This document shows, piece by piece, positions 32,871-48,626 of a DNA stretch of 64,000 nt (the first letter of the stretch is position 1; each line of letters starts with the position of its first letter). The translations under genes were made by a program, and so were the position numbers. The stretch is taken from contig BCKQ01000001.1 in NCBI GenBank assembly GCA_001600695.1, forward strand, positions 1,676,005-1,740,004, given 5' to 3'. The stretch comes from Ascoidea asiatica JCM 7603 (taxonomy: Eukaryota; Fungi; Ascomycota). Under the pieces are notes generated by a model. The model was not told the origin of the DNA and ran no database searches. It was given only the letters and a program-made list of their open reading frames with translations.

Positions 32871-33036
32871 TTCCAGAAACTTCGAGAAGTGGAAGCACAT
32901 AGAATCGAATGGAAAAATTCCTCTATTATCGGGAATTTATATCCCATTAGTGAAGGTTAATTGGAACATTCTAGAAACTTTCAAATACACCACATACTTA
33001 ATGTCCGGTTAATGTTAGCAATAGAATCTTCCAGAA
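32871..33036. promoter_or_regulatory. Three perfect heat-shock elements (Hsf1 sites)
   Basis: TTCcaGAAacTTCgaGAA (32871-32888), GAAcaTTCtaGAA (32964-32976), GAAtcTTCcaGAA (33024-33036). Confidence 0.85.
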
Positions 33037-33251: not shown

Positions 33252-36200
33252 TCACTTCAATAATTTTTTATAATTACCACGGTAGATAACCTTTTTATAA
33301 TCTAAATGTTCCAACAACTTTTTCCAAAGCCAATTTCCTCTGAGAACATTTTCATTTCCAACAATAAACAAGCCTTTTTTAGCTCTGGTTAACGCAACAT
33401 TCGTTCTTCTTTGATTTCCAAGAAATCCAATATCCTTAGTTGAATTGGATCGAACGCATGAAAAAATAATATATTCTTTTTCTCTTCCTTGAAATGAGTC
33501 TATCGAACCAATTTCAACACCTCTGACATTTCTAATACTAGGTAAACTATCACTGCTATCTGAACACCGTTCATCTAACTTAAGCATTTTTTTTTTTAAG
33601 TTTAAGGTGATATTTTCAAATTCATTTTCCATACCACTCTTATTACTATTTTCATTTTCGTTACTGCTTGTATTCTGATTAAACTTTTTAATCTTCTTTT
33701 TACTTTTGCTTTTAACTTCACTTTTAACCTTTTCCTCTTTACATTCCTTTCTACTTTTCATTTCCTTTTTAGTTGCTTTTTCTACATAATTTTTATTCTC
33801 TTCAAATGAATGTGTGATACTGTCAATGACAAGATTTTCATTAATTTTAGATATATTCTTTCTAATATCTTTCTCCTTGCCATTTTTCCTTAGTTTTGCA
33901 GTTAAGATAACAGTACTCTTTGCCCCATATTTCGCCTTAAAACCATTTTCGATAGTCAACGACTCCTCACTATTTATCAACCGAGAGTCGTTCAGTTCCA
34001 ATGGCAATTTTTGGCTTGATTGAGAATGCTCCCATACCTTTATTTTCTTGCATTGGGTCTGGTTAAGATGTTCAATTCGACCAGATTGATTATTAGTTTC
34101 ACGGCTATTTTTGAAGTAAGAACTAACTTGCATTCCATTCTGAAGTTCAAAAGTCTTCTCCTTCATTGAGCCTTCTATTTCTTTAAAATTAATCTTTTTT
34201 GAGATTATTCTTTTATTTGGTCCCCAATAAAAGTTTTTAAAAAATTCTATTGCTAAACTGAACGTATTTTTCATCCAAGTGAATACACTAAATACATTAG
34301 ATTTCTTTTGTTTATTTTTTCTGTCTTTAAAATTAGCATTGATTTTTTTTGAATTAGTTGAATTAACAGGCTTCTTACATTTTAGCTCAATTTTTCCTTT
34401 TTCAATTTTATTCTTTAATGAGGCGAATTTAGCGTTTTTAATTCCTTCTTTTGGTGTACTTTCAGTTACTTCTTCAAGTTTTGGGTTATCTGCTATGTTT
34501 GTAATCAGAAATGAACTATCATTCAAATAAACATTTTTATCTCTGAGTACTGTAGGTTGAGTAAGTTGTTTGATTTTCTTATAACCAGATATATTCCTTG
34601 AAATGAATTCAATTTTGGAACCTTTAATGGTTGTCTCTTGGAAATTTGGTTCATCAATTTCAAGAGCTTGGATCTTAACATCTATTTGCTTTTTTTTTTT
34701 CATGTTCGAACGTTTTTGATCATTTATTCCCAAAAAATACATAATAATATCTCCAATAAGTTCTCGTTGGCCAGAATATGGAGTAATTACACCTATTTTT
34801 GATAAGGGAATATTTTTTCTCTGCATTAAATTCAAAATTATTTCTGCACAAATCAAAGCATCCATATGATTGTAATAAGTAGGTCTTTCTCCTCCTATCG
34901 AGGAGTCGGTAATCATTATTTTTTTTTCAAGATTTTCATGATGAAGAAAAATAACTTGATTATTCTCAGCCATCCAAAGAAATTTGGGTTTTGAATCCAT
35001 TCTATCTATATGTGTAACACCATCAACAAGCTTGTTTTTATAAAATTGTTTTCTTGGAAATTCACTAATTGAAGGATGCATCCGATATTGTGTATTTAAC
35101 ATAATAATCTGCTGTGGATTACTGGTAGAATATCTTTCAAAAAATGATAACTCCAAAGCCTTTGGAGCCTTGCGATGTAAAAAGGGACCAAGTTGTTTGG
35201 GATCACCTACAAGAATAATCTTAAAATGATTCAATGATCTTAAATTGGATATTGGAATCATCAAATCTGCTTCTCTAACCTGAGCAGCTTCATCAACTAA
35301 TAGATAATCAAACTCAATTTTAGAAAGTTTTGGATCACCAGAAACAGCAGTAGTACAACAAATAATATTTGAGGTATTCAATAATTGATTTTCGAAAAGC
35401 TTGACCTTTCTAAAAACTTTATTAATTGTACTCTGATTTTCAAGCTTGGAATTCAAAAAAGAAAGATATTGTGATTTCATAGTTTCAGGTAATAGAGAGT
35501 ACACTTTTGATTGTAAACATAAATCAGTCACATTACTTTTATTCAAAGAACTTTTTGGATCATAATTAGAAGCTCTTGCTCTTGATACAACCCTTAAAAC
35601 ATTTAATCCCTCATGGGAAAGCTTTTCAGCAAGATTATCAACCGCCATATTTGAACTAGAGAATACCAAAAAATTTCTATGGGGATTCAAATGAAGTATT
35701 TGTTTGACGATTTCTGCAGAGGTTGTTGTTTTACCTGTTCCAGGAGGACCTCTGATGAAAGTTAGCTCATTATCTAAGCAGCTTTGAATTGCTACATTTT
35801 GAGAAGAATTGAATTTTAGATTTTGTTTAGAAGAGTTGGTGTTATCTTTGGTATTGAGATAATTGAAGAACTTCAAGGACTCACAATTAACTAAACAGTC
35901 AAATATTAATAGAAGTGAGCTTAAGCCTTTAATTCTTTCAAAAAATTTTGCGGATGCTAAAATAGTTCTTTGAAGAGTTACATCTGGTATAAAAACATGC
36001 AAGCCAGTAGAATAATCGAGCTCCTTACTCAAATCATTACGAATAGTCTTAAAAATAATTTTTGTAAAATTTACTGGATCCTCAAAATTGTCCTTTCCCA
36101 TCAAATTAACAAAAGAAATTTTTAATAAAAATAAATCTTCTTTTAAAGGATGATAAAGGTAAATAAAAGTATTCTCAAGTATATTTTTGATTCTTAGTTG

Positions 36201-36383
36201 AGAAAATTGTTTTTTAATATCCTTTAATTCATAAAAATCTTCTAATGTTAAAGTAATTGTTTGCTTCCCATTTTTATTCTTGAAAGAAACCTTGAAATTT
36301 TCAAATGATTTGAATGATCTGAATTGCTCCAAAAAAACATTTTCTAATAAATTATTTAAATATAAACGGCAATTTTTAACCAT
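33252..36383 (-). CDS. Upf1-like SF1B helicase (Ecm32/Mtt1-like) with large insertion in RecA2
   Basis: GPPGTGKT, SNMAVDNLAEKL, DEAAQ, VGDPKQL, QYRMHP, IGVITPYSGQ, IDSFQGREK, NVALTRAK; no Upf1 CH zinc domain. Confidence 0.85.
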   Translation of the reverse strand: MVKNCRLYLNNLLENVFLEQFRSFKSFENFKVSFKNKNGKQTITLTLEDFYELKDIKKQFSQLRIKNILENTFIYLYHPLKEDLFLLKISFVNLMGKDNFEDPVNFTKIIFKTIRNDLSKELDYSTGLHVFIPDVTLQRTILASAKFFERIKGLSSLLLIFDCLVNCESLKFFNYLNTKDNTNSSKQNLKFNSSQNVAIQSCLDNELTFIRGPPGTGKTTTSAEIVKQILHLNPHRNFLVFSSSNMAVDNLAEKLSHEGLNVLRVVSRARASNYDPKSSLNKSNVTDLCLQSKVYSLLPETMKSQYLSFLNSKLENQSTINKVFRKVKLFENQLLNTSNIICCTTAVSGDPKLSKIEFDYLLVDEAAQVREADLMIPISNLRSLNHFKIILVGDPKQLGPFLHRKAPKALELSFFERYSTSNPQQIIMLNTQYRMHPSISEFPRKQFYKNKLVDGVTHIDRMDSKPKFLWMAENNQVIFLHHENLEKKIMITDSSIGGERPTYYNHMDALICAEIILNLMQRKNIPLSKIGVITPYSGQRELIGDIIMYFLGINDQKRSNMKKKKQIDVKIQALEIDEPNFQETTIKGSKIEFISRNISGYKKIKQLTQPTVLRDKNVYLNDSSFLITNIADNPKLEEVTESTPKEGIKNAKFASLKNKIEKGKIELKCKKPVNSTNSKKINANFKDRKNKQKKSNVFSVFTWMKNTFSLAIEFFKNFYWGPNKRIISKKINFKEIEGSMKEKTFELQNGMQVSSYFKNSRETNNQSGRIEHLNQTQCKKIKVWEHSQSSQKLPLELNDSRLINSEESLTIENGFKAKYGAKSTVILTAKLRKNGKEKDIRKNISKINENLVIDSITHSFEENKNYVEKATKKEMKSRKECKEEKVKSEVKSKSKKKIKKFNQNTSSNENENSNKSGMENEFENITLNLKKKMLKLDERCSDSSDSLPSIRNVRGVEIGSIDSFQGREKEYIIFSCVRSNSTKDIGFLGNQRRTNVALTRAKKGLFIVGNENVLRGNWLWKKLLEHLDYKKVIYRGNYKKLLK

Positions 36384-37007: not shown

Positions 37008-37334
37008 ATGTCTTCTAACTTAGGAAACGAACAGAATACAAAAGAACTAGGAAATAGGTTGCTAGAGACCATACAAGAAAATACTTCAAAGCTGGAAATT
37101 AATACAAAAGCATCAGACTCTAGTGAAACGGAAATCGAAAATGCAAATGAGGAGTTCAATGAAAATGATGAAGAAAAATTACTTGAGGAGGTTCTTTTTT
37201 TGAGAGATAAATTACAATTTATAGTTTCTACGATTTCAAAAACCAAAAGAAGCTGTGATAAATTGAAACAAGAAAACAAAAATTTACAAGATTATGTTGG
37301 TAATTTAATGTCCAGTGGTACATTTATGCCTTAG
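37008..37334 (+). CDS. SLO1: Short coiled-coil SCOCO/Slo1-like protein
   Basis: C-terminal KTKRSCDKLKQENKNLQDYVGNLMS matches the SCOC/Slo1 pattern KLKSENQVLGQYIENLMS; ATG at 37008. Confidence 0.75.
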   Translation: MSSNLGNEQNTKELGNRLLETIQENTSKLEINTKASDSSETEIENANEEFNENDEEKLLEEVLFLRDKLQFIVSTISKTKRSCDKLKQENKNLQDYVGNLMSSGTFMP

Positions 37335-38292
37335 GTTAATTGATTAATAAGACAGTATGTGCTTTATTGCCAGTTTATTTTTTTCAAACAAAGTTAATTT
37401 TCATTAGAAAATAATTTATTCTGAAAAAGATAATCTGGAAACGGATAAATGATTCTTGGGTCTTTTAGCTTTTTATGTAAAATTAATTTATTGTTAACGA
37501 CACTTTTAAATCTATTTCAAATTTTTATTTCTACTTGATAGTTACATTATTTGATCAGTCGACCCGAATGCGTTCTCCCCAGTTTTTCCTGGTAATAAAT
37601 ATCCACTTTTCATATTTATTTAATTTTTAGCTCCCGAATGTTAATTTTGATATGCAATTTTTTCTTGTAGAATTGTTTTTTAGAGCAGTCCGGTAAAAAG
37701 CCTTATTACAAAACAACAAAGAATAAATATTATTTGATACATCTACTATTACTTTTACTATTAGTAGTAACTCTTATTTATAGCACTCAGCCAATAAATA
37801 TCAATACTTCACCACTCGGTGAAAACTCAAAAATTAGATTTGAAACTTTCAAAAATTCTAATTTTACAAATAGGAAAATCCGGTAGTATTCTAAAAGTAA
37901 TGAATTGAAATGTTCCTTTATTATCAACTCTTTGAAATACTTTTTTTTTATAAGACAATCAATTCCCTTTTGAATGAAATATATTTTTGAATATTCATTT
38001 ACAGTCTTTAATTGCAATTTACACTATTAGTAAATTCTATACTGTGTTAATGAAGGTCTCAATTTTGACTAACTAACTTGAATGATCAGTGGTTAAGTTC
38101 TCTCCTCTTTTTTGTTTGTAATAGTGATTGAACTATGATTTTATTCTAAATGAAGTGTTAATTTTTCAAAATATCTGGATTTATTATAAATAAACCAGGA
38201 ATCCATCAATATTCTCAATCCGAGTTACTATTTTTTAATGGTCTTTAATTAGCAAAATTTCACTAACACTGTTTTTTTTGTATTTTTATAAA

Positions 38293-40269
38293 ATGTTTCA
38301 ACTATTTAATCCTTGCTGCTCTATTATCCTTTTATTGGCGATAAATGTTTTTGCCTTTCCTTTTGATAAAAGGGATGTTTCTGTTAAAATTTCTGATGCT
38401 TCAACAAATCAAACTTCTTCAATACTTTATGGGGTTATGTTTGAAGATATAAATAATTCAGGTGATGGTGGTATTTATGGTGAATTATTGTCCAATAGAC
38501 AATGGAATTCAAAGCAAACTCTCTATGAAAATTATGCTACTGTAGGTGATGTTACCTTATCTTTGGTTGATGACACTGTTTCTACTGGATTAACTAAGGC
38601 TTTGGAAATGGCTGTTGGAACTTGCTCTTCAAACACTGGGGAAATTGGATTTTCAAATGATGGATGGTGGGGTATAAGTGTCAGATCAAATATGACTTAT
38701 ACTGCTAGATTTTATGTTAAAACTCCATCAGGTTTTGATGGATCTTTTACTGTAAGTTTAAGAACATTAACAGGCTCAACTACTTATGCTACATCAACTG
38801 CCAAAACATCCAATGGTACTTCTCTTTTCCCTGCAAAATCAAATGACTATGTCTTATACACTGCAGAATTAACTCCAGATAGTTCATCTTCAGATCTCAC
38901 AAATGGTTTTTATATCACTCTCCATGAATGTTCCTCTTATGCTAGTGAAGACTTTTATTTTGGATTCGTTTCCCTATTTGCAGAAAATTACAATTCGAAG
39001 CCTAATGGATTAAGAAAAGATATTGCTGATACATTAAAAGATTTAAATCCAACCTTTTTAAGAATTGGTGGCAATAATCTTGAAGGCCCTGATGTAGCCA
39101 ATCGTTTTATTTGGAATAATACCGTTGGACCAGTTATTGATCGTCCTGGAAGAACTGGTGCTTGGGGTTATTATAATACTGAAGGTTTAGGTCTTGAAGA
39201 ATATCTTCAATGGTGTGAAGATATGAATATTGCTGCCATATTAGGAGTATATGATGGCTATTCATTAGATGGTACTGCTATTGCTAAGGATAGTTTGACC
39301 CCATATATCAATGAAGTTTTGAATGAATTAGAATACCTTTTTGGTGATTCAGATACTACCTATGGTGCTCTAAGAATAAAAAATGGTAGAGAAGACCCAT
39401 ACAGTGTTGACATGATTGAAATTGGTAACGAAGACTTTATTTCAACTGCCTCAACTGAAAGTGCTGGTTATAGATTTAATGCATTTTATGATGCATTATA
39501 TGCAAAATACCCAAATAAGACATATATTGCAACTACTCAATATAATATTGTTTTCCCAGAAAACGTTTGGTGGGATCAACATTATTATGAAAATCCAGCA
39601 TGGTTTATTGATAGTTTTAATTTATATGATAACTATGATAGAACTGGTAATAATAAAATATTTGTTGGTGAATATGCTACTACTCAAGAAACTGGCTCAT
39701 GTTGTGATAATAGAATGGCTAACCCTTACCTTTATGGAAGTTTAGCAGAAGCTGTATTTATGATGGGATGTGAGAGAAATTCTGATCAAGTTACTACTTT
39801 AGCTTATGCTCCACTCTTACAAAATTTGAATAGATATCAATGGACCCCTGATTTAATTTCATTTAATGCTAATTTTGATGATATTGTTTTATCAACATCT
39901 TATTATGTCCAACAATTAATGGGAAGTGTATTAGGTGAAGAAACTTTAGAAGTTAGTAATGCTGCTTATGGACCTTTGTATTACGTCGCAACATATACAA
40001 GTTCTTCTAAAGTTATTTATATCAAATTAGCTAATATTGAATCTTCAGAATACACTTTTACTGCTTCTCTTGATATTAGTGCTTTCACAACTGCTTCAGC
40101 CACTATCAAGGCAACTGCCATTAGTGATTCAGATAGCTCGGTAATTAACACTTTAAATAATGCTAATGTTGTTTCATATGATGCTTCTTCAAATGTTACT
40201 TTCTCTGATGGCTCAGTAACAATCATAGCACCTGCTTATTCTTTGATTGTTGTTACTCTTCAATTTTAA
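38293..40269 (+). CDS. Secreted GH51 alpha-L-arabinofuranosidase
   Basis: Signal peptide plus KR site, GVMFEDINNSGDGGIYGEL, LRIGGNNLEG (acid/base Glu), EIGNED, FVGEYA (nucleophile Glu), ERNSD, YAPLL, WTPDLISF; ATG at 38293. Confidence 0.95.
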   Translation: MFQLFNPCCSIILLLAINVFAFPFDKRDVSVKISDASTNQTSSILYGVMFEDINNSGDGGIYGELLSNRQWNSKQTLYENYATVGDVTLSLVDDTVSTGLTKALEMAVGTCSSNTGEIGFSNDGWWGISVRSNMTYTARFYVKTPSGFDGSFTVSLRTLTGSTTYATSTAKTSNGTSLFPAKSNDYVLYTAELTPDSSSSDLTNGFYITLHECSSYASEDFYFGFVSLFAENYNSKPNGLRKDIADTLKDLNPTFLRIGGNNLEGPDVANRFIWNNTVGPVIDRPGRTGAWGYYNTEGLGLEEYLQWCEDMNIAAILGVYDGYSLDGTAIAKDSLTPYINEVLNELEYLFGDSDTTYGALRIKNGREDPYSVDMIEIGNEDFISTASTESAGYRFNAFYDALYAKYPNKTYIATTQYNIVFPENVWWDQHYYENPAWFIDSFNLYDNYDRTGNNKIFVGEYATTQETGSCCDNRMANPYLYGSLAEAVFMMGCERNSDQVTTLAYAPLLQNLNRYQWTPDLISFNANFDDIVLSTSYYVQQLMGSVLGEETLEVSNAAYGPLYYVATYTSSSKVIYIKLANIESSEYTFTASLDISAFTTASATIKATAISDSDSSVINTLNNANVVSYDASSNVTFSDGSVTIIAPAYSLIVVTLQF

Positions 40270-40651
40270 AGATAAAATTGTATGATTTCTATATCACGCA
40301 CACAAAAAAAATTTTACACTTTACTTTTTTTTCAATCTAGCCTTTTCAAAATTTCATTTATGATAAACTATTCATGACCTATTTTTTTTTTTAATGCATA
40401 CTTTTATTTTTAAACCCATCTTTTGTTTCATTAAAGGAGCATCCAAAGAACTAACTTTTAATAATCTAGTCAACTAAAATCTACAATGAATGCTGCAATA
40501 ATTAACATTATGTGGTACTATTCTTTAAACATGACTAACAATCGACTTAAAAATTGAAAATCAAGGCATTTTAAACAATCTCAAATAAGCAAGGTCTCTT
40601 TCGACGAACTTGCCCGAATTGCTACCCATTCATTAAACTTTATTGAGTATA

Positions 40652-42835
40652 TTAAGATTCTTTGCATTTTGTCAAAACTGCAGTATCGAGTAATGAATCC
40701 AAAAAATCATAAACTTTTGTTGAATCTTCATTTTGCATAGGATGTTTTGAAAAATACATGTCCATTAAAAGCTTTAGTTTTTGGGTAGTCTCAGCATCAT
40801 AGGATTTTATGTAGCACAAAGGCCTAGAATCAAAGCTGGATACTGATCCACTGGAGTGAAATGAAATATCTGCTTTAGAAATACGACTTTTGAAAGAATT
40901 TATTTTATTTGTTTTTTCATTATCTGCTGATTGTAAGATCTCCACTGCTTCTTTTTGACGATGAAATAGGGACTTCGTTTCCATATAAATTCTTTGAAAA
41001 AAATTCTTCCAATAGTTCTTACATATTAAATTATTCTCAGCAGTTAATTTCAAAGTAGAACTACTATCTATAATGTAATGTACAAATAAAATTAATGAAC
41101 ATATCAAACTAGTAAAGGTTAGAATAGTTATACCAACAAAAGAATTGATAAAATTGTAATTAGGTTGTAAAGTAGAACTAGAGAGGGAACTTTCATCTGA
41201 GCTTAGTCCAAAAATGTTAGCAATTGCAACTCCAGATGATGTAAACGCTAACCCAATTGATTTTCCAATTGGATCAACGGTATATTCCGTTAAATAACAA
41301 AGATTGAAAATTATTGTTAGTTGAACAAATAAATTAGTTATAGTACTGAATAATAAGTTAAGTTTCTTGTTTGAATTCGTGTAAATTGATAAAAGTACCA
41401 AAGAAAAAATGAATTGAAAAAACAAAGGTAAAATCAAAGCCAAACCTTTTCTAAAGCCCATCCAATTATCATAAACTATTGATAAAATTGGCACAATAAA
41501 AACAGAAATCCAAAACCCTATTTTAGCGATTGCTATTCCTTTAATCGTTGAATTATTGTTGTTATTTACATTTATACAAGATGACAAAATATTTTCAGAA
41601 TTTGAACAAGTTAAAGAAATAAATGAGTGTAAAAAATTAGACCAATCTTCAAATGAGGTTTTTAAATCATCTTGAGAAAATTCTTTTTTATTTGAAAATA
41701 ATTTATGAGATATCAATCTTTTCGCTTCAATTTTTGATTTAAATTTTGATCCCTCATCAATTTTAACTTGATTTATACATAATTTCTTTAAATTCACATC
41801 ATTCAAGCCAATTGTTTCGCTATGTTTCTCAGATTTAAAAAAACGACCGATAATTATATCTGAAAAACATCTAGAATCGTTATCAAATTTGGGTAAGAAA
41901 AAAAGATCTAAGGAAGATATTAGAAGAGTAGAAAGCCCAACAATTAAGTAACAAAATTTCCAGTTCAGCCAAACCAGCAGATTAATATGCTTGATTATAC
42001 TATTATAAATTAATTCAGTACATGATGATCCAAGAAGACTACCAACGTAAACAATGCATAATCGAGTTGGAGTTAATCTAGAAGTTGAATCTGTCCATGA
42101 TGAAACGTAAACTAAAATGCATGAAGAAAGCCCGGCAGAAGAGGCAGTTTGAATAAGTCTTACAATCAAAAACCCGACAAAATTATAGATAAAAAAAGCG
42201 AAAATATTAGTAATTGACAAAAATAATAATTGCAAACCAATAACATAACCGCCAAATTTCTGAAATAGAATATTTAAAAAAACTGGAAAAATTATCAGAA
42301 TTAAGGAAAGAATTGAAGAAGTTATTGAGAGTTTATTAGAAGATAAGTTTAACTCAGCAATCATATCCGAATTATCTAACAATAAATTCATTATTGAATC
42401 GTTCAATTGATATATAAAAAAAGATAAAAATAATAAAAATAAGCACCTATTTTTCTGTATGGAGATTTTTAAAACCTTGACAACGTCTAAAAATTTCACT
42501 AAAATTGAACTTAAGCTTTTTCCGGGAAATACTCTCAGTTCTCGTTCATGTAAAGTATCTGGAGTTGATTGTTGAATTGTAATATATTGATTCAAATGAT
42601 TGCTTTTATCCTTTTTACTTTTTGTTATTGAACTAGTGCTTATGGAATCTGATTGTTCTTCAAAAAGTGATTCGACGAATGGCTTAATTGAATTCTGGAA
42701 AAAAGAGTCTAATGTTTCCTCATAATTCGAGTCCTTTGTAATGTGAGAAAATCTTGAAAATAGTTCATTAATTATTTTATTATTATTTGGATTATCCAAG
42801 TCTATTTGGTTTATCACTACCTGACTTGAAGACAT
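40652..42835 (-). CDS. Highly diverged MFS transporter (anion:cation symporter/allantoate permease-like)
   Basis: About 12 hydrophobic segments; WLNWKFCYLIVGLSTLL..FFLP and GFLIVRL..AG..YVSSW echo ACS-family motifs. Confidence 0.7.
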   Translation of the reverse strand: MSSSQVVINQIDLDNPNNNKIINELFSRFSHITKDSNYEETLDSFFQNSIKPFVESLFEEQSDSISTSSITKSKKDKSNHLNQYITIQQSTPDTLHERELRVFPGKSLSSILVKFLDVVKVLKISIQKNRCLFLLFLSFFIYQLNDSIMNLLLDNSDMIAELNLSSNKLSITSSILSLILIIFPVFLNILFQKFGGYVIGLQLLFLSITNIFAFFIYNFVGFLIVRLIQTASSAGLSSCILVYVSSWTDSTSRLTPTRLCIVYVGSLLGSSCTELIYNSIIKHINLLVWLNWKFCYLIVGLSTLLISSLDLFFLPKFDNDSRCFSDIIIGRFFKSEKHSETIGLNDVNLKKLCINQVKIDEGSKFKSKIEAKRLISHKLFSNKKEFSQDDLKTSFEDWSNFLHSFISLTCSNSENILSSCINVNNNNNSTIKGIAIAKIGFWISVFIVPILSIVYDNWMGFRKGLALILPLFFQFIFSLVLLSIYTNSNKKLNLLFSTITNLFVQLTIIFNLCYLTEYTVDPIGKSIGLAFTSSGVAIANIFGLSSDESSLSSSTLQPNYNFINSFVGITILTFTSLICSLILFVHYIIDSSSTLKLTAENNLICKNYWKNFFQRIYMETKSLFHRQKEAVEILQSADNEKTNKINSFKSRISKADISFHSSGSVSSFDSRPLCYIKSYDAETTQKLKLLMDMYFSKHPMQNEDSTKVYDFLDSLLDTAVLTKCKES

Positions 42836-43517
42836 ATTGCTATTTATGAGAATATATTTTTGATTTTGATTGAATCTTTATGAACTGATTCAAGTAGGGT
42901 TAAATAGTAAATTTGCAAAAGGTTAATACAGATATAAAAAAGCTCTAATAGATTCTCTAGTGCAATAGCTTTGAATTAAATACGCTTCCAATATCTGATT
43001 TATTTTTCTCATCAAGCCAAAATTCTTTTTACCTAGTGCTTAGCCAGTTAATTATATTAGATTATATTAGCTTAGATCAAGTATCATAACTTCTAATAAA
43101 TGATGCTATGATGTAAGACATTATTTTCGTTTATAGAACCAGTTATTTTTTTCATATTTTAAAATGATACTTATTTTTTTGTTTCTTGTAAATTACTGTA
43201 ACGATGATAAATTCTAAATATTTGGTATGCTTTTATCCGATTTTAAGGTTTAACATTAAGGACAATAGAGCAAAGCTAGCGGAAGCTAATCTTGCCACTA
43301 AAATCACAATGAATTGTGTTTAATTTTCAAAATGCAGAGAATAGAAGAATCTATTGTATGAGATCTATTAATTTCCTATCGCAAAAGATCATTTACAGCT
43401 TTATCTTACAAAACAAGAAAAGAAAATAAAAATTATGCTTATTGTATTGAAACTAAGAGTAAGAACTATTGAAATGAGATAAAGACAATGGTAAATTATA
43501 AAAGAAGCACATTAGAT

Positions 43518-44045
43518 CTAAGCATAACTATATGTAGTTTCAGTATAGTCTTCAACTTCAGTTCCATATAAAGCATCTTGCTCTTCGGATTCTGTTTCAG
43601 ATGGTGCTTCAGATGGTGAGGCATTGAAAGTTTCTGAAGCAGCACTATAAGCTAACAAGGTGGTTGTACCATCTTGTGAAGCATTGTAAGTAGTAGTTTG
43701 ATAATCCACAACAGAAAGAACAGCGGAACTTGTAGTTCCATAATCTACAGTAGCAGCAGAACTAGTAGTTTCAGAATCAGCAACAGAAGTAGCAGCAGTA
43801 GTGGTAGCTTCGGAATCACTGCTTTCCATGACACATTGGTAATAATATTCATTTTGTTCAACACAAGTTCCAGTATTACAACAAGTTGCACCAGTCCAGT
43901 TCAAACCACCACATTGATAATATAAATCAACACAACTTGAGCTCGAACTTGATGAGGATTCGCTAGCAGCTGAGGTTGACAAAGTAGAGGAAGCCATAGC
44001 ATTGATTGCTAATGCAAAAACTAATAAAGAAGATTTGGTGAACAT
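43518..44045 (-). CDS. Secreted non-catalytic protein with fungal cellulose-binding module CBM1 and Ser/Thr-rich tail
   Basis: Signal peptide; [34 protein letters not shown] (43833-43934) matches the CBM1 consensus. Confidence 0.92.
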
Positions 44046-44840
44046 ATTGATAAAAATATTTTTAAAAATTTAAGATTGAAGAATTAAATAAGCTAAAAAG
44101 CAAAGTAAAGGAATGACTAGATAAATTAATTGTTTGATAGAATTAATTGAATAACAGATAAAGACTGTAATAGATATATTTGATATAATTAGATAATTAT
44201 AATTAAAAATTAACATATCAAATGATCAATAATTATAGCAAACTTCACACTCCTTTTTATATATTTTTGAAATAATTTAGTCAAGTGAAAAATTTGTTAT
44301 AATTTTTTCTCTTGAAGTTTTCTTGTTCTCTTTTCAAGCTTTTTCAAGAAAATGTTTTAAAAATCGGTTTGAAATATTTTTTATTTACCATTATTGAAAG
44401 AAAATAACATCTAAAACGACAAAACAATAATGTTTAATAGTTAAGAAACCAAAATTACTTTGAAAAAATGGTTAAATAAACGCATTCTTAGATTCACCAG
44501 GAGAACTTTGTATTTTTATTCAATTATATTTATTTGGCTGAGAGGAATTCCTTTCAAGAACAAAGGCATTTGAAGGCTTGGGAAGATCATCGATTTTCGA
44601 TAATATTTACCATACCAAAATTTGTTTTAACTGGTTTGGCTTAAAGATTGAATCCATTTCAATTTATTTCACTATGGACCTCAGGTATTTCCATAACAAA
44701 CAACTATCTTTCTCATAAACAAGCAAATTGAACAACAGAAACACTTCATTTAATCGATCTTGGTTCTTTCGTCCTTCAACGATAGATTCAAAAATTGTTT
44801 GTACCGTTTTTCAATGAAATTTGGTTTCAGATTCGGGGTT

Positions 44841-44882
44841 CGGCTAAATTAGCAAAAAGCCTTGGCCCCGGTTAATTTAGCC
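44841..44882. promoter_or_regulatory. Compact motif cluster upstream of the CBM1 gene: XlnR/AraR-like, Rim101/PacC-like and Mig1/CreA-like sites
   Basis: CGGCTAAA 44841, CTTGGC 44861, CCCCGG 44866 (reverse strand AATTAACCGGGG), CGGTTAAT 44869, TTTAGCC 44876. Confidence 0.45.
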
Positions 44883-45125
44883 TCGTATCTAAAGCCAAAA
44901 AAACTGAAGCAAAAGCACCGAAGAAATTTTTTATAGTCTTTTGTATTTTTACTTTTTACCTTGCTTGCTTGAATTTTCATTTCTAATTTAATTCAGGTAT
45001 TTTGATTATATATTAATTATTAGCTAAATATGGGTATAAAAACTATAACATAGTTGCAAAGAAGAAAAAATCATTAATAAGCATAAAATACAATGGAAAA
45101 GATTTAGATCTTTTTGCAAAAATCA

Positions 45126-48100
45126 TCAAGCAGAAATATGTTTTTGATTGAAAATCACAGGATTTATATGATCAGAAACACTTGTACGACTAGAAGATTT
45201 AAACAAATCTTCCTGACCTGTTGTATCTAGAACAGGAGATTCATCAGGTAAAAAATCTTCATTACTATCTAATGGAATATTCGACGTATTTTCAATACCA
45301 TCCGTTAATCCTGTGATATCTTCATAATCATTATCTGTCAATTGAGAATTATCAATGTAATTCAAAGTTTCAAAATTATCCATACTTGGTAAATTTCCAT
45401 CTCTGATTATACTATCGTTTGAATTTAAATTTGAAGGAATTTCATTTATATCTTCATTATCACTTTCTTCTTCTTCAATTATAAAGCTTTTACTTACTTT
45501 ATCATTGTTTGTCAATGAAAATTTCTTTCTAGATTTAGATTGCATTGGAAATAAATTTCCATATGCATTTCCTAAAGGTGATTTTCTTCTTCTTGCATAT
45601 TCACTTGATGAATGAGCTGGAGTAAAACTATTAAAGGAAGATTTTGTTCTACCTCTCGAAGTTTGATGTAAACTAGTGGAAGCTTGTATTTTTTTATTAG
45701 ATAAATTACGATGATGTCTTCCGGGCGATATTATGGATGAAGATGATGAGTTTAAATCTTTTTCTGTTTTATTTTTTGTAGAACCTATTGAATTTTTTCT
45801 AGAGGTTGTTGGCGTAACACTACCATTTTTTTTATAAAATGGATCTGGAGATGAATTTCTTGAATCATAAAATGATCCTCTATTAGATGAATGATCAGAA
45901 GTATCTGTAGAATTCGATATCATTGAAACTGTTCGTGCTTTCAAATTTACTGAAAAATCAGAAGATGCAACTCTATTAAAATTCGGGCGTGGGGTATTAG
46001 AATTTGTAGTTGCAGTATCTTGAGAATAATTTGTATTATATGAATAGCCAGATGTTTCTGAAATTTGAGAAAATGATGAATATTGAGAAATAACAGAAGC
46101 TGGACGATGTTTCATTGAGAAAGTTTTCGCTATTGGAGTTTCACCATCATTGTTATTAGATTCTGGTATTCTTTCAGTATCAGGAAATGACTTCTCTTTT
46201 ATAACTTTATCATTGAATGCTACATGACCATCATCAAGAGTTGTTTGTATACTATTTAAATTTTCTAAAGATTTTGACATTATTTCTAAATTTTTTTCAT
46301 TATCTAAATTTGGATTGGAATTTGAATTTAAGTTAGGACTTAAATTATTTGAATTTGCTGAAGATTTTTTAGATTTAACTGTACTTACATTGTTATTTTT
46401 ATTCATTATACTTAGGCCACTATCAGCTGATTTTGAAGAACTTAATCCAAGACCTAATTTTGGATTATTATGTTTTGAGATATGTAAATGAAAAATATTT
46501 CTCTCTTTACTTTTACCTAAATCATTCATACTTGATTTTTTAGAGATAAATATTCTTGGACTACTAATTAAATTTGTATTTCTTTTATTTCCATCGGAGT
46601 TTTCATTGTTATGATTATTGTTATTGCTATTAGTATTAGTAATATTATTAATGTGACTGTTGTTGTTATTACTTTTTATATTACTAATATAAGTAAAATT
46701 TTGATTATCTTTATTATTACTATTAATACTACTATTATTATTATTATTATGGTTTTCTTTATTATTACTATTTCTATTTAAGAAATTATTTTGAGGGCTA
46801 TTAGTATGGTTATGATTACCATTATTTTTTATATTATTATTATCATTATTACTATTATTATTGAAATTGTTTTTGTTATGATGATTGAAAGTTTTATCTT
46901 TTGATCTTAAAGAAGGGGATAATTTATTATACTGATAATTTTCATATTGTCTATTTGAAGAAAAAAGATGAGAAATTTTTTTCATTAAATTATTTTTTTT
47001 TGGAGAAATTGGAGTTACAAATGTCATTTCATCTATATTATTATGTCTTGTTTTATTATTGTTATTATTGTTATTATTGTTATTATTGTTTGGAGTTATT
47101 ATACTTGTATTGCTTTTGGTATTATTTAAAAGAATATTTGAATTACTTTTTTTATTATTTAATTTTGCACTTATATTACTTATTACATCAGCTTCTTTTA
47201 ATAAATGCTTTTGTTGTTGTTTAATATTATTACCGTTATTATTATTGTCATTGTTGTTATTTATATTGTTATTATTGGTGTTATTATTGATAGTATTATT
47301 ATCATTATTGTTAATATGTATTGTTAAATCTCCAGAAGATTGTTCATTAATTTTTGTTGAATTAGATAAGTTAGTAGACAATTTTGTAGATAAATCATTT
47401 GAAGAATCTTTTAATTGATCTTTAATTTTAGAAGAAACAATTTTAGTTAAAGGCAGAGTATTATCAATTAATTGAGATACTCTTCTTTGAGCAACTTCTT
47501 TTAAAACAGTACTTCTACTTGAATTACTTCTTCTTCTTTTATATTGAATTCTTTTTTTTTCTTTTTCAACTAATAATTCAAATAAACCAGATAAATTATC
47601 ACATTTTCTATTATATATACTATCTTGTAAATTATTTATATCAAAACCCATTCTTTTTAAATTTTTTAAAACATATCTTTCAGATTTTGATTGAAATTGA
47701 TTATTTAAGAAATTTTTTGAAATTTTAAAAAAATTTGAAGAAATTTCTAAATTTTGTAAACCATAAGGATATAAAAATGAATTTTTTAAAATTTCATCAA
47801 TTGAAGGTCTTTTTAATGGATTTTTATTTAAAATTGATTTAATTAAATTTATTGCTTCTATTGGTATATCATTTTTATAAATTGGATCATTATTAATAAT
47901 TTTAAAACCAGTTTTAATTTCATCATCTTCATCAAATGGATATTGACCATATAATAAAGTATATAAAATTATACCTAAAGACCAAATATCAATTTTAAAA
48001 CCAGAATAATTTTTTTTTAATAATAATTCTGGAGCCATATAAACAGTTGTACCACAAATTGTATTTAAAATTGATTTATTTGTACATTCTCTTGAAAAAC

Positions 48101-48626
48101 CAAAATCAGTTAATTTACAATTTTTTTTTTTATCTAATAAAATATTTTCTAATTTTAAATCTCTATGAGCACAATTTAAATTATGAGAATAAAGTACAGC
48201 AGAACAAATTTGACTAAAAAATTTTTTTGTTTGATCTATTGAAACTCTTTTAACAGATAATAAATAATCTAATAATTCATTTTTTGGACAATATTCTAAA
48301 ACCATATAAATTTTATTTTCAGTTATTATAACTTCATATAATTTAGTTATATTTGGATGAATTAATTGTTTATGATAAAAAACTTCTCGTACAACATTTG
48401 AATCAATTTTTGAACCAGATTTTAAAACAACTTTTGATTTTGTAAATTTATGAAAGGCTAAATAAACTTTACCAAAAGAACCTTCACCAATTTGTTTAAT
48501 AATATGATAATTACCAATATCAGATAATTTTGAAGATGTAAAATCACTATATAATTGATTATAAGAAGCAGTTATATGAGCAATATTATTTTTTTCATCA
48601 ATTTTTGATCTATTATTATTACTCAT
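45126..48626 (-). CDS. Ser/Thr protein kinase, CAMK-like (YPL150W/Ppk16-like), with long Asn/Ser-rich tail
   Basis: SYNQLYSDFTS..IGNYHIIKQIGEGSFGKVYLA, VREVFYH, HRDLKLEN, DFG, APE. Confidence 0.9.
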   Translation of the reverse strand: MSNNNRSKIDEKNNIAHITASYNQLYSDFTSSKLSDIGNYHIIKQIGEGSFGKVYLAFHKFTKSKVVLKSGSKIDSNVVREVFYHKQLIHPNITKLYEVIITENKIYMVLEYCPKNELLDYLLSVKRVSIDQTKKFFSQICSAVLYSHNLNCAHRDLKLENILLDKKKNCKLTDFGFSRECTNKSILNTICGTTVYMAPELLLKKNYSGFKIDIWSLGIILYTLLYGQYPFDEDDEIKTGFKIINNDPIYKNDIPIEAINLIKSILNKNPLKRPSIDEILKNSFLYPYGLQNLEISSNFFKISKNFLNNQFQSKSERYVLKNLKRMGFDINNLQDSIYNRKCDNLSGLFELLVEKEKKRIQYKRRRSNSSRSTVLKEVAQRRVSQLIDNTLPLTKIVSSKIKDQLKDSSNDLSTKLSTNLSNSTKINEQSSGDLTIHINNNDNNTINNNTNNNNINNNNDNNNNGNNIKQQQKHLLKEADVISNISAKLNNKKSNSNILLNNTKSNTSIITPNNNNNNNNNNNNKTRHNNIDEMTFVTPISPKKNNLMKKISHLFSSNRQYENYQYNKLSPSLRSKDKTFNHHNKNNFNNNSNNDNNNIKNNGNHNHTNSPQNNFLNRNSNNKENHNNNNNSSINSNNKDNQNFTYISNIKSNNNNSHINNITNTNSNNNNHNNENSDGNKRNTNLISSPRIFISKKSSMNDLGKSKERNIFHLHISKHNNPKLGLGLSSSKSADSGLSIMNKNNNVSTVKSKKSSANSNNLSPNLNSNSNPNLDNEKNLEIMSKSLENLNSIQTTLDDGHVAFNDKVIKEKSFPDTERIPESNNNDGETPIAKTFSMKHRPASVISQYSSFSQISETSGYSYNTNYSQDTATTNSNTPRPNFNRVASSDFSVNLKARTVSMISNSTDTSDHSSNRGSFYDSRNSSPDPFYKKNGSVTPTTSRKNSIGSTKNKTEKDLNSSSSSIISPGRHHRNLSNKKIQASTSLHQTSRGRTKSSFNSFTPAHSSSEYARRRKSPLGNAYGNLFPMQSKSRKKFSLTNNDKVSKSFIIEEEESDNEDINEIPSNLNSNDSIIRDGNLPSMDNFETLNYIDNSQLTDNDYEDITGLTDGIENTSNIPLDSNEDFLPDESPVLDTTGQEDLFKSSSRTSVSDHINPVIFNQKHISA

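Follow-up and report, generated by a model that had tools for sequence, protein, structure and literature searches.

The 64,000-nucleotide stretch of DNA analyzed here (the window) comes from the budding yeast Ascoidea asiatica JCM 7603 and corresponds to positions 1676005–1740004 of contig C1 (BCKQ01000001.1) in an assembly of 20.3 Mb and 71 contigs (GCA_001600695.1). Between a SLO1-like gene and a YPL150W-like kinase gene, three intact open reading frames (ORFs) encode a secreted α-L-arabinofuranosidase of the GH51_2 type (38293–40269, + strand), a highly diverged ACS-type MFS protein of the Dal5/Tna1/Soa1-like kind (40652–42835, − strand), and a stand-alone CBM1 protein (43518–44045, − strand). 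The predicted leader of the CBM1 gene contains the element AGTCATTCCTT (sense reading; 44108–44118, − strand), which lies 73 bases before the start codon and exactly matches AKUCAUUCCUU, a published Ssd1 motif (PMC2573929). The leaders of the GH51 gene and of the MFS gene lack this element, and not even its short core is present in either of them. The region from 39500 to 45300 is unbroken and without differences in contigs from two separate sequencing studies, either of which is possibly the source of the assembly. An earlier note on this DNA had described the three genes, their positions and their flanks, and these are correct, as are the identities it had assigned, which were corroborated by domain, profile and fold evidence. 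The plant-wall role it had proposed for GH51 and CBM1 is also supported. Its central proposal, a co-regulated unit for attachment, debranching and import, is poorly supported, because the MFS protein is not a sugar porter, the supposedly shared promoter motif is not enriched, and the Ssd1 element is present at the CBM1 gene only.

The CBM1 protein (175 aa) consists of a signal peptide, an intact CBM1 domain (43830–43934; PF00734, 6e-11), in which the six Cys and the flat-face aromatic positions are kept, and an acidic Ser/Thr tail; it has neither a catalytic domain nor a hydrophobic glycosylphosphatidylinositol tail. A lost catalytic domain adjoining the gene was considered and rejected, because the intergenic DNA contains no remnant of one. 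The gene belongs to a dispersed, mould-like plant-wall secretome. The rarity of CBM1 in Saccharomycotina, which the earlier note had taken as a premise, does not apply to this genome, where 14 CBM1 genes are spread over 11 contigs. In these genes, the domain is combined with GH45 in eight cases and with GH5, CE8 and DPBB in one case each, and three are stand-alone. Counted by family, the plant-wall arsenal includes 8 GH45, 7 AA9, about 9 GH28 and 5 PL1 genes. The seven AA9 genes, which encode lytic polysaccharide monooxygenases (LPMOs), are located on contigs C1, C3, C7 and C19, and in their products His1 follows the signal peptide; a literature search returned no report on AA9 in Ascoidea. 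The CE8 case, a CBM1 fused to a pectin-methylesterase domain, is an unusual pairing. Two GH45 genes show Glu-type changes in the catalytic acid region, and the leader of one of them is without the Ssd1 element. At four places, among them C7 689–692 kb, genes for alcohol or polyol dehydrogenases are close to genes of the CBM1-GH45 or GH28 type. Ascoidea inhabits decaying wood and beetle galleries; xylose and cellobiose support the growth of A. asiatica, and L-arabinose does so variably (PMC11876787).

The leader element emerged from an unbiased k-mer comparison, in which GGAATGAC was present in 10 of 27 enzyme promoters and in none of 69 control promoters. Read on the sense strand, GGAATGAC is AGTCATTCCTT, and the copies are positioned 43–240 bases before the start codon. 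They follow a TATA-like box at a distance of about 35–200 bases, and no ATG intervenes between element and start; at the CBM1 gene, this box is found at 44257–44263 (− strand), at a distance of 218 bases from the start codon, and precedes the element. When the motif was relaxed to AKTCNNTCCT and searched for in sense orientation within 300 bases before the start, 20 of the 27 enzyme genes were positive compared with 0 of 62 controls (P 2e-14), with no antisense matches and none at −700 to −1000. The positive genes span nine gene families, and therefore descent from common paralogues does not suffice to explain the element. Genome-wide, AGTCDHTCCTTW occurs 49 times, as opposed to 19 times for the control, and 19 of the 49 copies fall in 28 collected leaders. 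A forward test with the other 32 exact matches identified 13 non-coding copies of AGTCATTCCTT that are followed by a start codon no more than 310 bases away. The products of 10 of these 13 genes begin like a signal peptide, and all five pectate lyases are among them. The PL1 family had been outside the training set, so that the 5/5 score is out of sample. In addition, Gas1-like, SUN-like and aspartic-protease-like genes (identified by eye) carry the element, the first two being of the classic Ssd1 target kind. Altogether, most genes of the secretome carry an Ssd1-enriched element in the predicted leader.

Variants of the element retain the second published Ssd1 motif, CNYUCNYU (PMC8934651). 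The published element shows a bias for the 5′ untranslated region and for the sense strand (PMC2573929, PMC8934651). An SSD1 orthologue is encoded on contig C4 (E 2e-195 to 7am1). A further RNB-domain gene (C31 36309–37385, in a 1,325-aa frame) obtains an Ssd1-like score and is without a Pfam match to the Dis3L2 C-terminal domain. That this motif might resemble 18S rRNA had also been considered, an idea dropped after the Ssd1 match had been found.

The product of the GH51 gene (658 aa, single copy) bears a signal peptide and contains the catalytic domain (PF22848, 5e-28) as well as the C-terminal domain (PF06964, 5e-21). It matches MgGH51 (PDB 6zps) over the full length (1e-119), the catalytic glutamates E380 and E460 are kept, and the GNE and GEY motifs align with those of MgGH51. 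The best match is a secreted GH51_2 protein of Trichomonascus vanleenenianus (TRVA0_067S00166; 45% identity), and in a quick tree the protein clusters, on a long branch, with Trichomonascus and yeast-like sequences (99% support). This grouping favors inheritance, and horizontal transfer from moulds was disfavored accordingly. GH51 has been found in 39 of 332 yeasts (PMC8254220). The earlier note had named arabinoxylan or arabinan as the substrate. Arabinan fits better: matches to GH10 and GH11 are absent from the genome, which encodes an arabinanase-like GH43 in addition to the GH28 and PL1 enzymes, which makes pectic arabinan the likelier substrate. Most likely, the gene encodes an arabinofuranosidase, as judged by family membership, with pectic arabinan as the predicted substrate alongside the GH43 arabinanase. 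The enzyme would be an ancient one among yeasts, inherited vertically, and would remove arabinose extracellularly.

The MFS protein (727 aa) has no Pfam match, and a word-based sequence search with it remained blank. A paralogue of 41% identity is located 112 kb away, surrounded by non-CAZyme (carbohydrate-active enzyme) genes, and a profile built from the two retrieves ACS-type members of MFS_1 from fungi, one of them an "alternative sulfate transporter". The structural model shows a complete MFS fold (predicted local distance difference test score, pLDDT, 78, from 23 sequences); individual MFS families are not told apart by the fold search. A sugar porter (PF00083) was rejected, as there was no Pfam match and the relatives are MFS_1 only. 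In both paralogues, conserved ACS residues are replaced, namely the Asp-Arg pair of transmembrane helix 1, the Glu of transmembrane helix 4, and a later conserved Glu. The role of the Asp-Arg pair and of the helix 4 Glu in proton-anion symport is known from DgoT/SLC17. Five CTG codons, which are decoded as Ser or Leu in A. asiatica, occur in the MFS gene and none in the GH51 or CBM1 genes, a hint at low MFS expression or weak constraint. Upstream of the paralogue there are two copies of GGCTAA and zero of CGGNTAAW. Nothing links the MFS protein to arabinose. It appears to be a rapidly diverging ACS paralogue which has ceased to look like a proton-coupled anion symporter; most likely, it would serve as a passive carrier or as a sensor, in either case without relation to arabinose.

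The motif CGGNTAAW, on which the proposed co-regulation was based, is present at the four positions that had been reported upstream of the three genes (37442, 43232, 44841 and 44869), and the copy at 33006 is indeed the sole other intergenic one. As two further copies lie inside ORFs, the window contains 7, with 4.95 ± 2.25 expected. The candidate site upstream of GH51 (CGGATAAA, 37442–37449, + strand) is 851 bases before the start and about 108 bases after the SLO1 stop, and that upstream of the MFS gene (CGGATAAA, 43232–43239, − strand) is about 400 bases before the start. Upstream of the CBM1 gene, a perfect 10-bp inverted repeat (44841–44882; arms 44842–44851 and 44873–44882) holds CGGCTAAA, CGGTTAAT and CCGGGG; it is also less than 300 bases from the kinase stop. 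CGGNTAAW is the published preference of XlnR (PMC6486530), and thus the motif was not invented for this locus. Four copies in 2,720 local intergenic bases are nominally rare, with a Poisson P of 1.8e-4, and only 0.07% of random promoter triplets share CGGNTAAW; yet a motif belonging to this CGG class is common to all three promoters in 21% of random triplets, and the locus had been selected out of dozens with enzyme genes. Genome-wide, CGGNTAAW occurs 2,034 times (about once per 10 kb) compared with 2,474 for the reversed pattern. The enrichment at CAZyme genes that the earlier note had suggested looking for is absent: the 27 other enzyme promoters contain 3 copies in 27 kb, which is background. 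It was not found in the GH43 arabinanase, XYL1-like or XKS1-like promoters either; in this pentose-pathway test, the assignment of the xylitol and arabitol dehydrogenase promoters was uncertain. None of seven CGGNTAAW pairs inspected on contig C1 lies beside a recognizable plant-wall enzyme gene. CGGNTAAW was therefore rejected as a genome-wide enzyme-gene motif, being rarer than the reversed control and not enriched in promoters. The Mig1-like sites that had been pointed out at 37577 (CTGGGG, 37577–37582, − strand) and 44866 are both there but uninformative, since they occur at background frequency (SYGGRG in 27 of 48 control promoters).

A probable XlnR/AraR-like regulator is encoded on contig C9 (329907–332726, + strand; 939 aa); a search for such a homologue had been suggested in the earlier note. 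Its C-terminus is one that we take to resemble that of XlnR. Among 90 zinc-cluster matches, it is the only one with a CxxCNxxRT[KR]C recognition helix, and by eye it shares 15 of 30 zinc-finger residues with an N. crassa XlnR finger (PMC12911045). The homologue is thus probable by eye, but searches of the atlas, PDB and metagenome resources returned generic zinc-cluster matches only, so that orthology is not confirmed by tools. XlnR has been reported to be absent from Saccharomycotina (PMC12969433); if the C9 gene is a member of the XlnR family, it contradicts this absence from budding yeasts.

Several explanations for the sequence features at this locus have to be weighed. The C9 factor may bind CGGNTAAW at GH51, at the CBM1 repeat or at both and mediate co-induction by pentoses at the transcriptional level, which would be compatible with Ssd1 control and would require no physical module. 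The local Poisson statistic and the singular recognition helix point in this direction, as do the CGGCTAAA and CGGTTAAT sites of A. niger abfA (PMC6486530); moreover, inverted GGCTAA pairs are one type of Xyr1 site (PMC5468973), and the repeat at 44841–44882 is the best candidate XlnR-type site. However, neither the enzyme promoters nor those of the pentose pathway support a regulon of this kind, inverted GGCTAA pairs occur genome-wide 5 times versus 9 in the control, the GH51 and CBM1 sites are about 800 bases out and closer to the stops of the neighboring genes, and the C9 protein is a putative orthologue, judged by eye; we regard this explanation as rather unlikely. Another zinc-cluster factor might bind CGGATAAA at GH51 and MFS and control redox or detoxification genes; Rgt1-, Mrr1- or Yrr1-like proteins would presumably be the candidates. 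CGGNTAAW, mostly as CGGATAAW, is indeed enriched before aldo-keto reductase genes (9 copies in 14 kb), but this is a post-hoc observation on 14 promoters, and we consider the proposal improbable. Three copies of CGGATAAW precede an ARA2-like gene, and at the aldo-keto reductases the motif possibly is a genuine site of another zinc-cluster factor. About equally improbable is a reading of the leader motif at the level of DNA, as a TEA/Tec1 site (CATTCC) or an initiator, instead of an RNA site for Ssd1. CATTCC is contained in the commonest variant, and the position about 35–200 bases past the TATA-like box is one where scanning initiation could begin; yet the sense-strand bias is strict, in CACTCC, CGTTCC and CTTTCC the TEA core is destroyed but CNYUCNYU kept, and the flanking AKT agrees with the published Ssd1 motif letter for letter.

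The least probable explanation, which we consider very unlikely, is the module of the earlier note, a single selected, co-regulated cluster in which CBM1 anchors, GH51 debranches, and the MFS protein imports or senses arabinose. Three non-core genes are adjacent, with the motif upstream of each; the genes downstream of the kinase differ from those in other yeasts; and at some yeast-like loci MFS genes are close to GH51. However, at the loci tested these MFS genes have no tblastn match to the MFS gene of the window, whose product is no sugar porter and is devoid of transport residues, the CBM1 protein is a cellulose binder untethered to GH51, the Ssd1 element sets the CBM1 gene apart from the other two, and growth on L-arabinose is merely variable (PMC11876787). 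The genes flanking the three are outside any such unit, on the left the SLO1-like short coiled-coil gene (37008–37334, + strand; PF10224, E 3e-10) and on the right the YPL150W-like kinase gene (45126–48626, − strand). Next to the kinase orthologues of Saccharomycopsis crataegensis, Wickerhamomyces mucosus and a third yeast, all distant genomes, there is no adjoining GH51, MFS or CBM1 gene; the upstream Mur-ligase neighbor of the kinase is kept in W. mucosus, and GH51 homologues in other, distant yeasts have different neighbors. The three genes are probably mere neighbors with separate roles, and the three-gene cluster by itself is of little importance. Elsewhere in the window, an Upf1-like helicase (33252–36383) contains a long lysine-rich insertion.

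The best reading, which we consider fairly probable, is that the three genes are chance neighbors and that the CBM1 gene is part of a plant-wall secretome marked for Ssd1, with predicted binding of Ssd1 to the transcripts. Several observations weigh against it. The synteny comparison covers distant yeasts only, the control genes were mostly non-secreted, and the placement of the element inside the mRNA is deduced from the DNA sequence. A lone CNYUCNYU is bound weakly in vitro (PMC8934651), and the CCAACU half-site, reported as budding-yeast specific and weakly enriched (PMC8934651), is not enriched in the leaders (1 of 27 versus 3 of 62 controls). Furthermore, the presence of CGGNTAAW upstream of all three genes is nominally rare, and the genome encodes an XlnR-like regulator.

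In S. cerevisiae, Ssd1 represses the translation of bound mRNAs until it is phosphorylated by Cbk1 at growth sites. By analogy, Ssd1 of A. asiatica would bind the mRNAs of the plant-wall enzymes and hold back their translation, phosphorylation by Cbk1 at growth sites would release the repression, and enzymes and cellulose-binding proteins would then be made at hyphal tips. The CBM1 protein would probably coat or loosen cellulose without catalysis. A more far-reaching two-layer reading, which we put forward tentatively and hold to be somewhat less probable than not, is that Ascoidea has rebuilt a mould-like machinery for attacking plant walls with a retained XlnR-family activator as one layer of control. 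As the other layer, the mRNAs for plant-wall enzymes (cellulases, LPMOs, pectinases) and for CBM1 proteins without catalysis would have been brought as a whole under the Ssd1-Cbk1 circuit, so that their translation would be linked to hyphal-tip growth; in the literature found, these layers are without description for budding yeasts. If Ssd1 control is true, the output of biomass-degrading enzymes is coupled to polarized growth translationally, via an 11-base leader element, which would allow a direct test of tip-localized enzyme synthesis and offer a simple handle on enzyme secretion.

The components of the locus can be compared with several known systems. With other secreted GH51_2 enzymes (MgGH51, TRVA0_067S00166, A. 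niger AbfA), the GH51 protein shares the full-length match, the catalytic glutamates and the signal peptide, but it sits on a long branch, and here pectic arabinan is the likelier substrate. The fungal ACS transporters (Dal5, Tna1, AstA/Soa1-like) are the nearest relatives of the MFS protein by profile search and have the MFS fold in common with it, whereas identity is only about 20%, the tails are long, and the charged residues are lost in both paralogues. Like the XlnR/AraR regulon of filamentous ascomycetes, the locus displays the same motif text in a genome with a probable family member; however, the motif is not enriched here at enzyme or pentose-pathway promoters. Mould-type cellulose enzymes are also kept in Geotrichum candidum (GH45, AA9, CBM1) and in Komagataella (CBM1-GH45), but the Ascoidea expansion is larger, belongs to another yeast order and includes a large pectinase set. 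With the Ssd1-Cbk1 regulon of S. cerevisiae, A. asiatica shares the leader motif, the sense bias, the position before the start, the orthologue, and SUN-like and Gas1-like targets, although there is mostly one copy per leader and the CCAACU half is not enriched. Finally, the described Ssd1 targets concern the wall of the fungus itself, whereas the putative targets in A. asiatica are GH45, AA9, GH28, PL1, CE8, GH5, GH43 and CBM1 proteins.

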